A DNA stretch of 63,172 bases, the filler included, from Lenisia limosa (taxonomy: Eukaryota; Protista; Breviatea), in NCBI GenBank assembly GCA_001655205.1. It is 12 parts of 12 records of this genome, joined end to end, with 100 filler letters (N's around TTAATTAATTAA, not from the genome) between each part and the next. Parts side by side here need not be neighbours in the genome. Positions count along the whole stretch, not along the records: positions 56,862 to 58,842 come from LPNZ01009756.1; 11 more parts are not named here. The stretch is one strand, 5' to 3'. The notes under the pieces were generated by a model. The model saw only the letters and a program-made list of their open reading frames with translations. It had not been told where the DNA came from and did no database searches. Position 1 is the stretch's first letter, and every line of letters begins with the position of its first letter. Positions 3,777 to 59,359 of this stretch are shown piece by piece. The position numbers and the translations under genes were made by a program.

Positions 3777-5689
3777 GGGGGGGGTGTTAGGAGGTCAAAC
3801 AGACCTGTGCACCATTGGGTAGTAGAATAGTTATATCTGGGGATATCGACCTGTTGAGTATATTTGCAAGTTCCAGCACCAATCTCCCGCCCCTCGATTG
3901 ACAAATAAACTTGATTGCGCGGGTTAAAAGGAAGTCTTATTGAAGATGTGACCTGCACGGCATTTTGGATCTAATCGTTCACTAAATCTGTTGTGAATTG
4001 CTTGTGGCACGACGAATACCACCAGTGGTTTTGTTAAAGCGAGCAAAACTCCATCTTAAGCCCTGGGTTCCAACCTGGAAATAAACAGCAACACGGTCTG
4101 TCACAGCCACACTCGGTTCAATACCTTCTTTATGTTTTCCTTTGTATTTCATTTACTTCTATAGATCAGAGACAGACAGGCACGGCGTCCCCAAAGCAAC
4201 CGAAAGGCAAAGCGTTCCATTGCTATTGTGGGTCTATGGGACAAATAAACTTGTTTATATTTATAACCCTAGTGTGGGTGCATACTTTCTATTTCGAATT
4301 GTTGATTCCTCCTGCCTCCTAGTGGTGTGCTTTAATTTATTATTCCAGGAACAAAGTCCTTTAAAGCGACCCAACCACATGTCTCCCCTTACCACACCCT
4401 CGCTGCCTGATCTCTCACACAGCATCCCAGAGTCAGCTCATGGCAAAACTCTCTTAGCGAAAGGTATAAAGCACATTGTATTTAATGAGACTAGGAGTAA
4501 CTTGGGAGTATGACCAGCCTCTTCTTGGTCTCNNNNNNNNNNACCATGTCAAACCCGGTATTCTGGCCATGCGAGCTATCACCCTGCTGGCCTGCAGACC
4601 AAATAGGTTAGTAGAATACTGTTCTTGATTGAACTGATTGTATACTTTCTAGAACAAAGCCACTGCGCTTGTAAGTTGGCTGATTTAACAGTTTCTTATC
4701 AGTTTCTCTTTGACACTTGTAGCTTTCGACCTTAAACCATGTCATCACATTCCAATTGCTAAAGAGTTCATTGAAACGGTTTACCATGCCAAGCTTGAGT
4801 AAGCGAACGTATTTATCTCTTGAAGTATCAAAATTGTGCCAGGAATATGGCTTCTTCAACAGTTTTAAAATTGGTAGATAACATCTTAGTTTAAAAATCC
4901 ACCTGTCAACGGTACTGAGAGTCAGTTGTCTTTCACTTTCGGACAACCGGGATTCTGTGCGTCTATCTCTGATGTGTAGGATCTTTTGCTACTTTTTCTT
5001 CTTGAGCTTCGTAATATTTTCACCTCAAGTTTATTATTGTTGAAATTTTATCGCTTATGTCTTCAGTTTTTACTTTGTGTTGTACCGAAATTGAAGTAAT
5101 AAGATCAACTCTTGGTCTTTTCAAAAAAGAAAATCCGAATTATTTTTGTGTTATTTCTTTCTGATTGGGATATTGCGGATAGATTCTGCCGGGTTACCAA
5201 ATATTTTTACTCTTTTCTATTTTATCGTATTGAAAATGAAAAACTATTGTACCATATCCATTACTAATATAATCTTGACGAACTTGATGCAAAATGGTAT
5301 TTTAGGAATAACACTCCTGGATAATTATTGTACACTCATATAATTCAAAAAGTGATTAGTAGATATTATCAAGTATTTTCCTAGTAATAGGAAAACAACA
5401 TAGTATCATATGTATCAGATTGTATGGTATTAAACTGTAATAAGATCTGAGTTCAGATTAAGGTCTTTATCTATCTATCTACTTTTGCTTTTCTATGAGT
5501 GTTTTTCTAAATTTCCATTTTTGTCAGGTTATCATATCACTGCGTTTTAAATGAGAGTATATTACATGTAGTGTATGTTGAAAAGACGCAACAATAATGG
5601 AATTGGGATATAGTTTTTGCACGATTTTTCTCTTTGCGTAATACTCTAGTTCCAAAGGCTCCACAAGGTGCACTTACTTGGAGGTGTGA

Positions 5690-7334: not shown

Positions 7335-10300
7335 AGGTTGCCCACGATGAACCCTTATTCAAGGCCTGTCACGCGGTCCTCACTAAATACGCTGGCGGTT
7401 TGTGGGTAAAGGTCTCATTGATTGTTATGGTGTAATAAATAGTGTTTTTTTGGTACCTTTTTTTAGTATTTTCCCAGATCCTCAAAATTGTTCAGAAATG
7501 GGGAAAACAGTTTTCCCACGAATAACAGAATTCTTAGACTTCCCCCCTGCTGACAGAATCAAGTTTATCATTAAGTCGCATGGTGTTCAAACTGATTTTG
7601 AGGTAATGATTGAGCCTTACGGTTTTTAGTTCATTGAAATATTAGCATTAACATAACACTTCAGGTTTCTGTAGAATCGCTCAAAGGTGAAACGGTATAT
7701 CTCCAGTTTTTGGAATCTGGTGGTGACTCATCCAACGACATTGAAACTAAGGCTTCCGAAGGCAACATGCCCTGTTTAATGCAGTGTATCTCTGATCAAG
7801 CACGGCTCCATCGTGTAAGTGTCTCAGTTTGATTGTTTTATTGTTAATCTCACACTCAAGGTCTTGTGTGACTGTTCCAATGATGAAGTGTTGCTGAAGA
7901 TTCTCAATACTGTGCCGATTGATTCTGAATTCGTGGGTTGCTTTCCTGATATTGTTCTCCTGACTCAAACAGGTCAAATTTGCGACAAACCCCCGTGTTC
8001 ACAAATTCATCATATTGACCCACCCGGAGTTCGCCAAAAATGAGCAAAAGGTAAATTAATTGTGATTGTAAAAATGGTTGGGGTTGTAATCAGTCAGCAT
8101 GAAGAATACAGAATGTACTTCTTTGTTGTTTCTGAGGTCTAGATGTAGTGTAATATTAGGTCCAAAAGATTTGTTGCTGATGAGTTTAGTTGCTCGAAAT
8201 GATGCGATATTTTGCAATGCAGAACCCCTTATCTGACAACTCCATGTTTCTCAAGGTCGCTAATCAAATCTCCGATTTCCAAGTGAGTTGTTCTGTTGAC
8301 TCAGTTTTTCATTTCTAAAGCCAGCTCTCATTTAGCTTTGCCTTTTATTCTTCAGCGAAACGAGACGATTGCAAATATCGCATTTGAAGCCATTAAGTTT
8401 GGTAATTACCATTTTGTTGCCGACCTTATGAACGCTGGTCTTCAAATGCATGACGAGAAATTGCAAGTTTGTTCAACAGCCATCGATATCATGTTTTAGC
8501 CGTTTCATATTTCCAAGCAGTTCTGGACTTTGGTTCAGGACAAGATTGTTGAGTTTTCAAAGCTTGAAAAACACTTCCTTTTGCAAGCGTATGGCTCAAG
8601 TAATGTAATGTTCGAATCAATGGTAGGACAAGGAGCTTTGTTGCTGATTACCAAACCATCATAATGCACCGGGTACAACTGCTTTTCTTTTTTCGGTTTC
8701 AACAACTAATACCCCACAAATGTCATAAGTATAGTATACACATTTAGGCTTCCCTACGTTCCCAAAAACTACCAAAATGCTCGATAAAACCTCGATAAAT
8801 AAAGATATTTCATCAGTCTTTTTCGGACCAGGGAATCACTAGTGATACATCCAAAATGATGGTGCATTCATCTGCAATATTAGTGATATGCTTATCACTA
8901 GTTGTTTACAATTTCAATATAAGATTTCCTATGAATTATCTGAAGTATTTGTTACTTTTCAAGTGGAAGCTGTACGGTGCAACCAAAGAGGAGGCGTACG
9001 CAGTACAAGTTGTCCAGACGTCTTCGAGCACCTTCAAGGTAGGCTTGAGGTCTCAACCCTCCCACATGCATATATATTCCTGACAATAATTTGACCTCTT
9101 ATTTGAGCTTACTAAGACAACTCCTTGCTATCATTATTATTGTGGATCTCGTATCGATAAATTTAGTGCTCCACCAAAAAATTTCAATCGCCTACATATT
9201 TTTAGCCTACCGAACTTCTGCTGCATCAAGCTGCCCGGAACAACCATTCCCATCTGGCTTCGAGAATCTTGTCCTTCCTCAAAATGGAACCCAATCAGGT
9301 TGATTCGGTTGGTTTGCGACATAACAGACAATGAAAAAAAAATTAAATTAAGTGCTTTGATCGCAGAAAGTAGTATATACATGTATATTACATATAATTT
9401 GAATGAATGATTGATTTGACACGCTGTTATACTTTTCAGCTTCCTCTAACAGTTTAGAATGGCGACACCCCCTTAATAATTGCTTGCTCTCAAGAGAACC
9501 AAGAACTTGCCAAGGTGTGCGTTGAACATGGTGCCGATGTCAATATCAAGGACAAGGTATGGTTTCACAATATTTTATAATGTGTGTGTTTTTGAATGTT
9601 CTGTTTTTGAAGATGTTTACCTTTTTGAGATTCCTTTAACAGTTTAGAATGGCGACACCCCTTTTATCATTGCTTGCAAGAAAGAAAACCAAGAACTTGC
9701 CAAGTTTTGCATTGACCATGGTGCCGATGTCAATATCAAGGACAAGGTGGGGATTTCAATAGTATAGTTTAATGCTTACCTCTCTACCCCCTGTAAAAAA
9801 TTGGTCAATTGAATAAAACTTGCATTTTCAAGAAGGAAGGCTCGAGAGAGCACAGAATAGCCAGAATTGGATGGATTTGGATACTTTCTTCTGTTGATGA
9901 GGCATATTCTTGATGTGTCAGTGTTCAGTATCTTTTTCTCTTTCCTCGTTTTCAAAATGTTTGTGTCTTTCAATAACAATCATTCTTGGATCAAGAAATT
10001 TTTTGAGATCACCCAAAAATAACAAAAGCGGGATAACTTTTTTTGTTTGTCTTTTCAAATTGTTTGATGCACATCTCACTTTAATGCGCATGCAGTAGAG
10101 CAAACACTTTTGAGATTCCTTTAACAGTTTAGAATGGCGACACCCCCATTATCATTGCTTGCTCTAAAGAGAACCAAGAACTTGCCAAGTTGTGCATTGA
10201 CCATGGTGCCGATGTCAGTATCATGGACAAGGTGGGGATTATACTACATTTGATATGTTTATCTTAAATCGACATATGCACCGTTATTATCTATTACCCT

Positions 10301-56761: not shown

Positions 56762-57028
56762 NNNNNNNNNNNNNNNNNNNNNNNNNNNNNNNNNNNNNNN
56801 NNNNNTTAATTAATTAANNNNNNNNNNNNNNNNNNNNNNNNNNNNNNNNNNNNNNNNNNNNGCAGAAGGTGGGTGAATATCATGGATTAGTTGAGTATTT
56901 ATCGTGGATTAGCCGAGGGTTTATCAAGGATTAGTCAAAGATTTTTCAAGGATAAATCAAGTATACTCATTAAATAATGCATTACAGCACAACCGATTTA
57001 AATGGTCGCTTCCTGCTGATCACGTTTT

Positions 57029-58708
57029 AGTCAGCTGGATGGAGGCACCATCGCGAGAAGGTCAGCTGTGTTCGCTTCAGCCCGGATTCCGCGCACCTTG
57101 TGTTTGCGGGGTATTTGTGCTCTTTTGTTCTCCCCAATAAACAGTACATATTATATATAGTATAGTATTTATTATTATTATTATTATTATTTGTTGATTG
57201 GGTTAGTTGAGTTTCCTTCGTTTGGTTGCTTACGTGTACCCAGAGTGGATTTGGGCTTTTTTGTTTCACAAATTTTTCAATCTCCCCCGTCCCAAATAAT
57301 AGCCAGAGCTGATTTCGGCTTTATGTCTGTTGTATGATTGTTCCAATTTACCCCCCCCCCNNNNNNNNNNNNNNNNNNNNNNNNNNNNNNNNNNNNNNNN
57401 NNNNNNNNNNNNNNNNNNNNNNNNNNNNNNNNNNNNNNNNNNNNNNNNNNNNNNNNNNNNNNNNNNNNNNNNNNNNNNNNNNNNNNNNNNNNNNNNNNNN
57501 NNNNNNNNNNNNNNNNNNNNNNNNNNNNNNNNNNNNNNNNNNNNNNNNNNNNGTCAGGCTATCAGGGTATTATATGGGGGAATTATATGGGCTATATTGG
57601 TAAATTATTGAGGGAGTATTTGAATACAAGACAATGAGAGTGGTAAGGGGGGAGATGGCATGATGTTGGAGTGTGTGAAGCTTCTCAGTAATTGATGACT
57701 CTCCCTCTCCTAACACCAGGAATAATTTTGCCATGATAATCCCCCCTCCCCCTAGATCAACACTGGAGATTATGCCACAATGTACTACAACTTAAGCGGC
57801 GACCGCGTGGACCAACGCGAGGATATTGATGTGGGTGAAGGGGAGGGGGGAGGGGGGGATAGAGGATGTTGGAATGCAGAGTATTAGTTTTCCATTTTCA
57901 CGAGTGATGGGATATGATGCTGCAGAAGCGACTGGCCTTGGCTTTGTTTGTTTTGTTGTCATCAACCCTCGTGTGTTGTCAGCCAACAGAGTTTATTTGG
58001 GCTTTTTGACTTCATAAACCAATTTTATTTACCCCCCCCCCCAGGCTCTCCCTTTCAACACTGACACCTGCGTAATTGGCCGACAAGTGACTGGAATTTG
58101 GCCCCGCTACAGCGACCGCACAGACATCAACTCCCTGCACCACCCTGCTGACTTGCCTGTTATGGTAACCGCGGACGACTTTGGCAAAGTTAAGCTCTTC
58201 AGCTACCCGGCCCCGAAGAAGGTTTGACGGGTGATGTAGGTTTTTTTAGTATGTAAAATGGGGAAAGAAGGAAAATCTCGATGAATCCTTATAATTATCC
58301 AGTTTTACTGGTAGCCCCGATATTTTTGGTTATTGTTGTTTATAGTATCCGAATACCTTACAATATTCATAAAAATTACCATAATTTCTACCAGTATTAA
58401 AAAAGAAACAATAGTCAGTTACAGTATAAAAGGAACACGATGATTTGTGCCTAAAGGTTCAATTCTCTCTGCTTGTTTGTTTCTCAAATATTTCACCAAC
58501 AGATTTGCTTTTGGCCTTTTTTTTTTTTATTATTTTTTATTTTTTTTTTTACCTTTTTTTTCCCCTCCAGGGAGCCCGCTTCCATGAACTCGGCGGCCAC
58601 AGTAGTCACGTGACATGTGTGCGGTTCCTCAACGGCAACGAGCGCCTTGTCTCCACCGGAGGTGCTGACGGCTGCGCTTTTGTCTGGAAGTGGGGGAGGG
58701 GGGTGTAA
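57029..58708 (+). CDS. EML (echinoderm microtubule-associated protein-like) WD40 protein, C-terminal part
   Basis: GIWPRYSDRTDINSLH..VTADDFGKVKLFSYP..GGHSSHVTCVRF..RLVSTGGADGCAFVW*. Confidence 0.9.
57890..58044 (+). repeat. Intron-3'-end repeat family A (representative). Copies at ~20237-20292(-), 20998-21088(-), 32209-32335(+), 32962-33038(+), 43719-43811(-), 49866-50010(-), 57241-57360(+, two), 58494-58570(+), 58785-58842(+), 60385-60428(+), 60735-60801(+), 61090-61128(+)
   Basis: Shared GATGCTGCAGAAGCGACTGGCCT(G/T)GGCTTTGTTTGTTGTTATCAACCCTCGTGTGTTGTCAGCCAACAGAGTTGATTTTGGGCTTTTT..TTCATAAATTTT..TTTTACTCCCCC, often followed by the acceptor AG. Confidence 0.85.
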
Positions 58709-59359
58709 TAATCGGGATATTAAGGTGGGAGAATGACGGACTTTCCATTTAGGTTTTTCTTTATTTCATAACATTTTTCAAGATACGCTGGATTGATGTA
58801 AGCGACTGGCCTGGGCTCTGTTTGTTGTTATCAACCCTTGTGNNNNNNNNNNNNNNNNNNNNNNNNNNNNNNNNNNNNNNNNNNNNTTAATTAATTAANN
58901 NNNNNNNNNNNNNNNNNNNNNNNNNNNNNNNNNNNNNNNNNNTTGATAGAATTTTGGGCAAAATGGCAAAAAATACTCTTAATCGCATAAAAACTGTTTT
59001 GAGCTACAAAAACAAGCCAACTTTTACTCAAGAAGTTATTAATAAAGAATGGAAATTGGTTGAGATTAAAAAAATCAATCGCTATCCTCTTGTAACTCTT
59101 AAAGAAGTCCATGATGATATATTGATTATTGTTGGTATTTTTTATGGTCAAAAAGGTATACATGACTAGGTGNNNNNNNNNNNNNNNNNNNNNNNNNNNN
59201 NNNNNNNNNNNNNNNNNNNNNNNNNNNNNNNNNNNNNNNNNNNNNNNNNNNNNNNNNNNNNNNNNNNNNNNNNNNNNNNNNNNNNNNNNNNNNNNNNNNN
59301 NNTTTTTCTATATATATACATATATATGTATATATACTCGTTGACACGTTTTTATTAAG

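Follow-up and report, generated by a model that had tools for sequence, protein, structure and literature searches.

Introners are known from Micromonas, Aureococcus, dinoflagellates and fungi, where 1,093 families have been described in 201 species (PMC12130899; PMC9860276; PMC11282704). Their working definition demands that similarity between introns extends to both exon-intron boundaries, which excludes transposons lying in existing introns (PMC12130899). They are the best current answer to the long-standing question of how new introns and splice signals originate. Here we describe a repeat family with a related but different pattern, one copy of which fills the 3′ two thirds of a 214-nt intron (intron B) between two exons of an EML-type WD40 gene of Lenisia limosa (Breviatea; assembly GCA_001655205.1). 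The visible part of the gene lies at positions 56862-58842 of a stretch of 63,172 nucleotides, composed of joined parts of the genome and hereafter called the window. With thousands of copies at intron 3′ ends, the family resembles a mobile acceptor module. We consider it, with a probability of about 0.5, to be a very abundant, non-coding and non-autonomous mobile element that colonises and rebuilds intron 3′ ends, spreading by a 3′-primed RNA route.

The family resembles introners in being short, non-autonomous and present in high copy number, in lying in sense orientation in introns of unrelated genes, in carrying splice signals of its own and in belonging to a very intron-rich genome. Unlike introners, it has similarity at the 3′ boundary only; the repeat includes neither the donor nor the initial 30-90 nt of the host intron. 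Its copies are 5′-truncated and stacked, and they show neither target duplications nor regular inverted ends. Since current introner screens require similarity at both boundaries, the family would escape them.

Intron ends capable of pairing have been described in several protists. Hemistasiid diplonemids possess introns with G- and C-rich inverted ends, and euglenids possess nonconventional introns (PMC12621601, PMC6221363, PMC11282704); Sulcionema specki has an alternative U1 small nuclear RNA with a C-stretch (PMC12621601). The introns described here share with those the G-rich start, the C-rich end and the ability of the two to pair, and a transposon origin has been proposed for the diplonemid and euglenid introns. 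A C-rich 5′ end of U1 as in S. specki would suit the donors found here, which consist of GT and a G-run. In contrast to those introns, the present ones fit canonical GT-AG borders and carry a defined 148-nt family in their 3′ part. The introners of Amoebophrya have inverted repeats of 8-20 nt at both ends, direct repeats of 3-5 nt across the boundaries and mostly non-canonical splice sites (PMC7789003). Both cases concern repeated introns with pairable ends in a marine protist, without a clear transposase partner; the present introns differ in having GT-AG borders and a single conserved end, and direct repeats were not found.

Some retrotransposons without long terminal repeats (non-LTR) and some short interspersed elements (SINEs) target simple repeats in a fixed orientation, as do R4/Dong, Kibi and Koshi. 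These elements and the present family have in common 5′-truncated copies with a shared 3′ end, a position beside a simple-sequence run, a fixed orientation and a 3′ tail common to different non-autonomous families. They differ in that here no reverse transcriptase partner, RNA polymerase III (Pol III) head or target duplication was found. In primates, the pyrimidine run of an antisense Alu copy, together with a nearby AG, is used as an acceptor, sporadically and in rare alternative exons. A transposon pyrimidine run with a nearby AG appears to serve the same purpose here, in a sense copy, with a probably constitutive acceptor and systematically. To our knowledge, no case has been described in which a C homopolymer, as target or tail, at the same time acts as the polypyrimidine tract. 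The family is thus set apart from introners by its one conserved boundary, its truncation and stacking, its canonical GT-AG borders and a homopolymer end that would double as the polypyrimidine tract.

The repeat family and its copies in the window

The full unit of about 148 nt consists of GTACGCTGGA, followed by GTGATGGG...CCAATTTTAC and a C-run. In its fuller layout, the consensus reads GTACGCTGGA, then GTGATGGGATGCGG...GTTGTCAGCCAACAGAGTTGATTTGGGC(T)nGTTTCATAAATTTTCCAATTTTAC, and always ends in a C-run of variable length. Iteration of an nhmmer model yielded a 138-nt consensus, which is preceded by GTACGCTGGA in about 10 of 24 long copies. The initial annotation had placed a repeat at 57890-58044, and the site was recovered, with the nhmmer core at 57904-58041 and the C-run and AG reaching 58044. 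The tail noted there (TTCATAAATTT..TTTTAC and a C-run) and the hairpin (ATCAAC..GTTG/CAAC..GTTGAT) are both part of the consensus. The copies in the piece at 56862-58842, and the intron that holds the full-length one, are as follows.

57831-58044, + strand: intron B, 214 nt, GT-AG, phase 0
57831-57903, + strand: donor GTGGGT with 25 nt rich in G, followed by a degenerate partial unit whose end, TTTTCCATTTTCAC, resembles the tail
57904-58041, + strand: full-length core copy (model 1-138; nhmmer E = 1.7e-42)
58032-58042, + strand: C-run (eleven C), followed by the acceptor AG at 58043-58044
58799-58842, + strand: second copy (model 22-70; nhmmer E = 4.5e-9) in intron D, cut by the contig end
57241-57288, + strand: 5′-truncated right half (model 84-131; nhmmer, BLAST)
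57304-57359, + strand: 5′-truncated right half (model 84-137; nhmmer), with its C-run extending to 57361 at the edge of the N gap
about 58495-58570, + strand: degenerate right half at the 3′ end of intron C, ending in TTTTCCCCTCCAG at the acceptor

Intron B is ordered as a G-rich 5′ end, a degenerate partial unit, a full unit, the C-run and AG. The core at 57904-58041 reads GTGATGGG...hairpin region...TTCATAAACCAATTTTATTTAC and the first part of the C-run. The copy at 58799-58842 is marked by direct repeats D1 and D3 (pairwise alignment z = 11.6), while the degenerate copy at about 58495-58570 matches the right half of the model (alignment z = 4.1).

The copy number of the core is far beyond chance. 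X1, the sequencing run that contains the window, places 6,693 contig pieces on 57897-58025 (at least 80% likeness), with a summed depth of 2-8 x 10^5 on the core versus 15-29 on the flanks. Over the first 73 nt of intron B (57831-57903), the depth is 33-86, compared to about 10^5 on the core. The majority letters of X1 differ from the window copy at 57939 (G), 57960 (T) and 57994 (G). For further copies, the repeat was translated and a protein collection was searched, which returned 23 spurious open reading frames (ORFs) called across other copies, all in ENA assembly ERZ3820729. Nine contigs of this assembly were fetched (L001-L006 and L008-L010; 96 kb). They contain 59 copies by the nhmmer model, amounting to 6.5% of the sequence, and 22 long copies have a mean identity of 90% to their own consensus. 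As the consensus letters equal the majority letters of X1, we infer that ERZ3820729 and X1 stem from the same or a very close species. A 26-base pattern of the conserved core had no match in a scan of JGI metagenome contigs, and a full-text literature search with three pieces of the consensus returned no paper printing them.

The assembly gap at 57362-57552 opens right behind the C-run that ends a copy, and X1 contigs also break within the repeat. The family therefore probably accounts for much of the assembly fragmentation.

Position and orientation in host genes

Gene strands were assigned independently of the repeat, by Pfam matches on ORFs. In the five genes that could be named by homology, all 34 of 34 copies lie in sense orientation: four of four in the EML gene of the window (+ strand), 14 of 14 in a dynein heavy chain gene (L005, +), three of three in an adenylate/guanylate cyclase gene (L001, -), four of four in an adaptin/HEAT gene (L002, +) and nine of nine in a CFAP65-like gene (L010, +). 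The dynein exons were placed by Pfam on ORFs and are collinear for DHC_N2 and AAA_6; a 217-aa ORF of the same contig matched only itself in the protein search. The dispersal through introns of unrelated genes and the sense orientation, both proposed in the initial annotation, thus hold for these five genes, and the pattern recurs on the nine other contigs.

When one index copy per locus is excluded, 42 copies agree with the local majority and eight disagree. Three of the latter lie in the minus-strand gene of L001, and four are reversed, truncated right halves. All four reverse copies in L006 and L008 are such right halves; those of L006, three in number, each follow a G-run, with distances to a donor of 0, 19 and about 150 nt. 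Although G-runs at donors are as frequent as C-runs at acceptors, the reverse orientation is roughly ten times less common.

The position of the copies was assessed in 49 copies with an intact 3′ end and sufficient flank. The first AG lies within 4 nt of the end of the C-run or copy in 25 of 49 (control 0.255, p = 1e-4), and within 12 nt past the C-run in 34. At least 40 open codons follow this AG in 38 of the 49 (control 0.42, p = 4e-7), and the GC content past the AG reaches 0.503 (controls 0.420, p = 7e-11). Ahead of the 5′ ends of the copies, a stretch of 90 nt has an intron-like GC content of 0.40. Sequences 3′ of the AG are exon-like and mutually unrelated, so that the similarity stops at the exon. 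The earlier claim that copies end at the acceptor is consistent with these figures. No adjoining exon-like sequence was seen in 15 of the 49 copies, and copies away from exons generally keep the C-run while lacking the AG.

Protein homology fixes the start of an exon directly behind the element at 58045 in the window, at about 2497 in L002 and at 2766 in L005. The window gene, on the + strand, comprises three exons in the piece at 56862-58842, which includes the N gap.

57727-57755, + strand: 3′ end of the intron before exon A, by direct reading the tail-like AATTTTGCCATGATAAT, then CCCCCCTCCCCC and TAG
57756-57830, + strand: EML exon A, INTGDYATMYYNLSGDRVDQREDID, whose frame runs on into exon B
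58045-58221, + strand: EML exon B, Pfam PF23414 (Beta-prop_EML_2), E = 2.8e-17, profile 170-225
58222-58570, + strand: intron C, GT-AG
58571-58689, + strand: EML exon C, PF23414, E = 1.1e-12, profile 227-264, also WD40
58690 to past the contig end, + strand: intron D, beginning with GTGGGGGAGGGGGG

To place the junctions of intron B with its exons, the reading frame was used along with homology to the L007 EML gene. L007 is a Logan contig from another organism, and its gene, 46% identical, was the sole comparison gene; a search of the protein collection with the EML exon returned a single distant relative. Exon A aligns with an L007 EML exon in a single BLASTP comparison (NTGDYATMY / NSGDYELLY, E = 0.001). 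Exon B matches human EML1 in the PDB (4ci8, E = 1.2e-11). Exon C resumes the EML profile directly after exon B without a gap, has a tblastx match to L007, and is in phase 2 at its 3′ end, with a donor at 58690. Segment 57727-57755 pairs with the G-run at 57847-57860 (inverted repeat I2) and is possibly a very short remnant of the tail of the repeat.

The visible part of the window gene has an intron about every 45 codons, compared to an unbroken 534-aa ORF in L007 (609-2213), which runs across the HELP domain and the first propeller. A 50-codon open frame rich in GC (56988-57137), which precedes the EML exons, matches nothing in Pfam and is not similar to the EML gene of L007.

The 3′ end of the copy directly adjoins the acceptor AG, so that the tail makes up the final 15-40 nt of the intron. 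It consists of (T)nGTTTCATAAATTTTCCAATTTTAC, the C-run and AG, and thereby offers two yUnAy motifs and a pyrimidine run free of AG. TTTTAC, or alternatively TTCAT further upstream, may act as the branch point; in intron B, this would be TTTAC at 58027-58031, with the C-run at 58032-58042 and the AG at 58043-58044 as the putative polypyrimidine tract and 3′ splice site. At the level of sequence, these observations support an element that donates splice signals, and the element together with the AG is likely to form a working 3′ splice module of many introns. The initial annotation had offered a supply of branch point, polypyrimidine and AG signals as one option, and the composition of the tail, with its yUnAy-type TTTTAC, its C-run and the AG present at acceptors, fits this. 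It had also considered an introner, and here the two halves of the proposal part: signal donation is supported, whereas an introner spanning the whole intron is not, with similarity confined to the 3′ boundary.

All 21 curated introns fit a GT donor, and the acceptors set by homology are AG, without non-canonical borders. The donors are G-rich, with 6.0 G at +3 to +14 versus 2.67 at random GT sites (p = 1e-9), and 10 of the 21 have at least six G in this interval. C-runs of at least six number 144 in 75.7 kb. In a count of the letters behind C-runs, AG follows 22 times and AC, which is GT and a G-run on the other strand, 23 times. The G-rich and C-rich intron ends are able to pair, and the predicted fold of intron B pairs its G-run with its C-run, with a z-score of just -1.24. 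Donors with G-runs and acceptors with C-runs suggest that the splice-site code is unusual, and a variant U1 with a C-rich 5′ end possibly reads it.

G-runs follow donors (GTGGGG...) at all loci; in the window, they occupy 57831-57858 and 58690-58703.

A second, unrelated family of 50 nt (module 2), GATTAGTGCCTTTACGCCAATATTCTTCATCGAAATTTCCTTCGTTTTAC and a C-run, has only the TTTTAC and C-run end in common with the main element. It has 18 matches in L001, L002, L004-L006, L009 and L010. At L005 6410-6477 and 8055-8117, it forms the acceptors of two homology-confirmed dynein exons, supplying the acceptor at 8118 in the latter.

Origin and spread

The copies show a shared 3′ end and variable 5′ truncation, as is characteristic of SINEs and non-LTR retroposons. 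Among 56 copies, 32 begin past model position 10, whereas 47 reach position 129 and only nine end before it. Copies are also stacked head to tail, joined for instance at TTTTAC|GTACGC. Of four stacked pairs, three have a clearly higher score for the copy on the acceptor side (L004 8533/8660, L005 1482/1608 and L005 3251/3394). A C-run lies within 16 nt upstream of 7 of the 32 truncated copies, versus 4.8% in controls, while an AG at the upstream flank occurs in five of 32 copies, which equals the control.

We postulate that the element spreads via an RNA intermediate, which is the least certain step, and that reverse transcription would be primed from the 3′ end of this RNA on C-runs. The targets would be C-runs at intron 3′ ends, in a genome where G-runs follow the donor GT. 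Such 3′-primed insertion would leave kept 3′ ends with 5′ cuts anywhere, and head-to-tail stacks in which the copy nearest to the acceptor usually fits the family model best. The few reverse copies would be truncated right halves behind G-runs near donors, and a second, unrelated family would share nothing with the first except the TTTTAC and C-run end; regular inverted ends and target duplications would be missing. The truncation and stacking fit a footprint of RNA-mediated insertion beside C-runs rather than cut-and-paste. With G-runs at donors no less common than C-runs at acceptors, the choice of target cannot by itself produce the sense bias. Selection must also act against antisense copies, in which the reversed tail reads GTAAAA, a donor-like motif. 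If homing to existing C-runs is true, transposons can rewrite splice signals throughout a genome without creating introns.

Several points weigh against this reading. No reverse transcriptase ORF or partner long interspersed element was seen in the approximately 98 kb reached, and in the 96 kb no Pol III head derived from tRNA, 7SL or 5S was found, with no ARAGORN or Rfam match. We know of no SINE with a poly-C tail. Inspection by eye and counting revealed no clear target-site duplications in the curated introns or around a solo copy in L003. The C-runs upstream could be nothing more than neighbouring copies of greater age, and the retention of 3′ ends may partly reflect selection on the acceptor, yet copies in mid-intron retain their 3′ ends too. 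The G-rich donors, an inverted tail at 4 of 21 donors and the high intron density also fit an element with inverted ends that creates introns. The poly(A) RNA run X2 gave no coverage of the EML exons, and the use of the acceptors and of TTTTAC as branch point is deduced from homology and sequence. Loci were picked through ORFs crossing a copy, which biases the copy density upwards, and homology gives names to just a handful of genes. ERZ3820729 and the window probably represent one species, to judge by their identical consensus letters.

Other candidate classifications were also considered. A tRNA-derived SINE was dismissed for want of an ARAGORN tRNA and an Rfam family, and a Helitron on the basis of its ends, with no 5′ TC and no A/T insertion point. 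For a miniature inverted-repeat transposable element (MITE) or other element with terminal inverted repeats, the expected ends were not seen: GTACGC... and ...TTTTAC with the C-run are not inverted repeats, inverted tails occur at a minority of donors, and no fixed-length duplication was seen. The idea that inverted copies of the tail bound every intron was abandoned after scoring of the 21 donors.

The strongest competitor of the RNA-mediated reading is a true introner, a MITE-like element with GT and a G-run on the left and a C-run and AG on the right, which would insert in exons and create introns; the 138-nt core would then be the well-kept right arm, and the left arm would decay or be deleted. 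We regard this as possible yet doubtful. It would account for the G-rich donors, for C-runs preceding AC about as often as AG, and for the pairing of G-run and C-run in the predicted fold of intron B. An inverted tail stands directly behind the GT or the G-run at L006 6626, L006 4238, L005 8243 and L005 8709, and introns are very dense, with one to about every 45 codons in both the EML gene and the AAA1 region of dynein. Of the four EML introns in the window, three are without a counterpart in L007, a comparison with one distant gene. MITEs have been suggested as the source of the inverted, G- and C-rich intron ends in hemistasiid diplonemids (PMC12621601). As in introners, similar sequence occurs in introns of many unrelated genes (EML, dynein, cyclase, adaptin-like and CFAP65-like) and reaches the 3′ boundary without entering the exon.

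At the 5′ boundary, however, the high-copy unit stops short of the donor. Some 30-90 nt of intron or more precede the core. In intron B, the initial 73 nt are unique sequence, and for the 5′ parts of both intron B and intron D, BLAST gave no further match in the 96 kb of related contigs. The donor ends share G-richness only and are overall unlike the inverted tail (p = 0.48). No target duplication was seen in any of the curated introns, 5′ truncation and head-to-tail stacks are unlike the traces of cut-and-paste, and mid-intron copies lack the AG. Intron C, with its degenerate copy, lies within one codon of an L007 intron and may be old. Creation of introns by the element, and with it the seeding of the host introns that the initial annotation had suggested, is currently the less likely reading. 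If intron creation is true, the family would be a new type of introner with G-run and C-run ends and would link canonical introns to the paired-end introns of euglenozoans.

An ordinary high-copy transposon in pre-existing introns, its bias due purely to purifying selection and without a role in splicing, appears unlikely. Orientation bias of transposons inside genes is common, some copies do not adjoin exon-like sequence, as given above, and the core shows no mark of selection for a structure. However, the gap between copy and AG amounts to no more than a few extra C's in every second copy, and the homology-confirmed exons start at the next base, so that the element provides, with its own end, the sequence used as acceptor region. 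Nor does selection by itself explain why the 3′ end and no other part faces the exon, or why module 2, which is unrelated, has an identical end and position.

Less probable still is an intron-derived retroelement coupled to the spliceosome, in which a copy of excised intron RNA would re-enter intron 3′ ends by reverse splicing or self-priming. The unit starts with GTACGCTGGAG in about 10 of 24 long copies, so that it begins with GT and, at acceptors, ends with AG, and the solo copy at L003 8947-9100 reads ...AACAG|GTACGC...CCCCAG|AACC. Within genes, the copies are exclusively sense and they are 5′-truncated, and target duplications were not found, all of which would suit such an element. On the other hand, no intron was found that uses GTACGC of the unit as its donor, the host introns starting 30-90 nt upstream; mid-intron copies lack AG; and full reverse splicing would produce complete introns at new sites, not truncated stacks at old acceptors. 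If true, this reading would describe a mobile 'acceptor cassette' homing to C-rich intron 3′ ends, and would be natural evidence of transposition of spliceosomal intron sequence at the RNA level.

An intron-encoded structured RNA retained for its fold (small nucleolar RNA-like or a regulatory hairpin), which the initial annotation had also listed, is very improbable: the consensus holds a two-stem hairpin (ATCAAC/GTTGAT and GTTG/CAAC) and the core occurs in 21 contigs of X2, but the RNAalifold prediction (-4.95 kcal/mol, covariation term +0.13) lacks this hairpin, its ten pairs in 22 copies show one-sided changes only, mostly pair-breaking and none compensatory, the window piece and the 96 kb have no Rfam match (and no tRNA was found), and thousands of diverged, truncated copies mark a transposon. 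In the window copy, the outer stem has one mismatch, with T at 57994 where most copies have G.

Other repeats and local features

A 22-bp minisatellite (TATCRAGGATTWGTCAAGGATT-like) is present on unrelated contigs, at 56878-56953 in the window, at L004 159-250 and at L001 8319-8351. In L004, the array immediately adjoins the 5′ side of an element copy. A third short repeat, ACTATAATCCAATATCTCTTAAGCGTGAT, occurs at L010 2406-2450 and 619-650, L001 7517-7548 and L006 7284-7314, and in L010 it is located close to intron 5′ ends.

In L006, two inverted arms of about 95% identity (4084-4172, + strand; 4257-4345, - strand) surround a 64-nt exon at 4175-4238, which is frame-consistent with its neighbours. 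Each arm consists of the right half of the element and 16 nt outside the family consensus, and these flanking inverted repeats could loop out the exon in the pre-mRNA. At L005 8519-8597, the acceptor and about the first 50 nt of the following dynein exon are copied inside the intron just upstream, which looks like a local tandem duplication that made a pseudo-exon.

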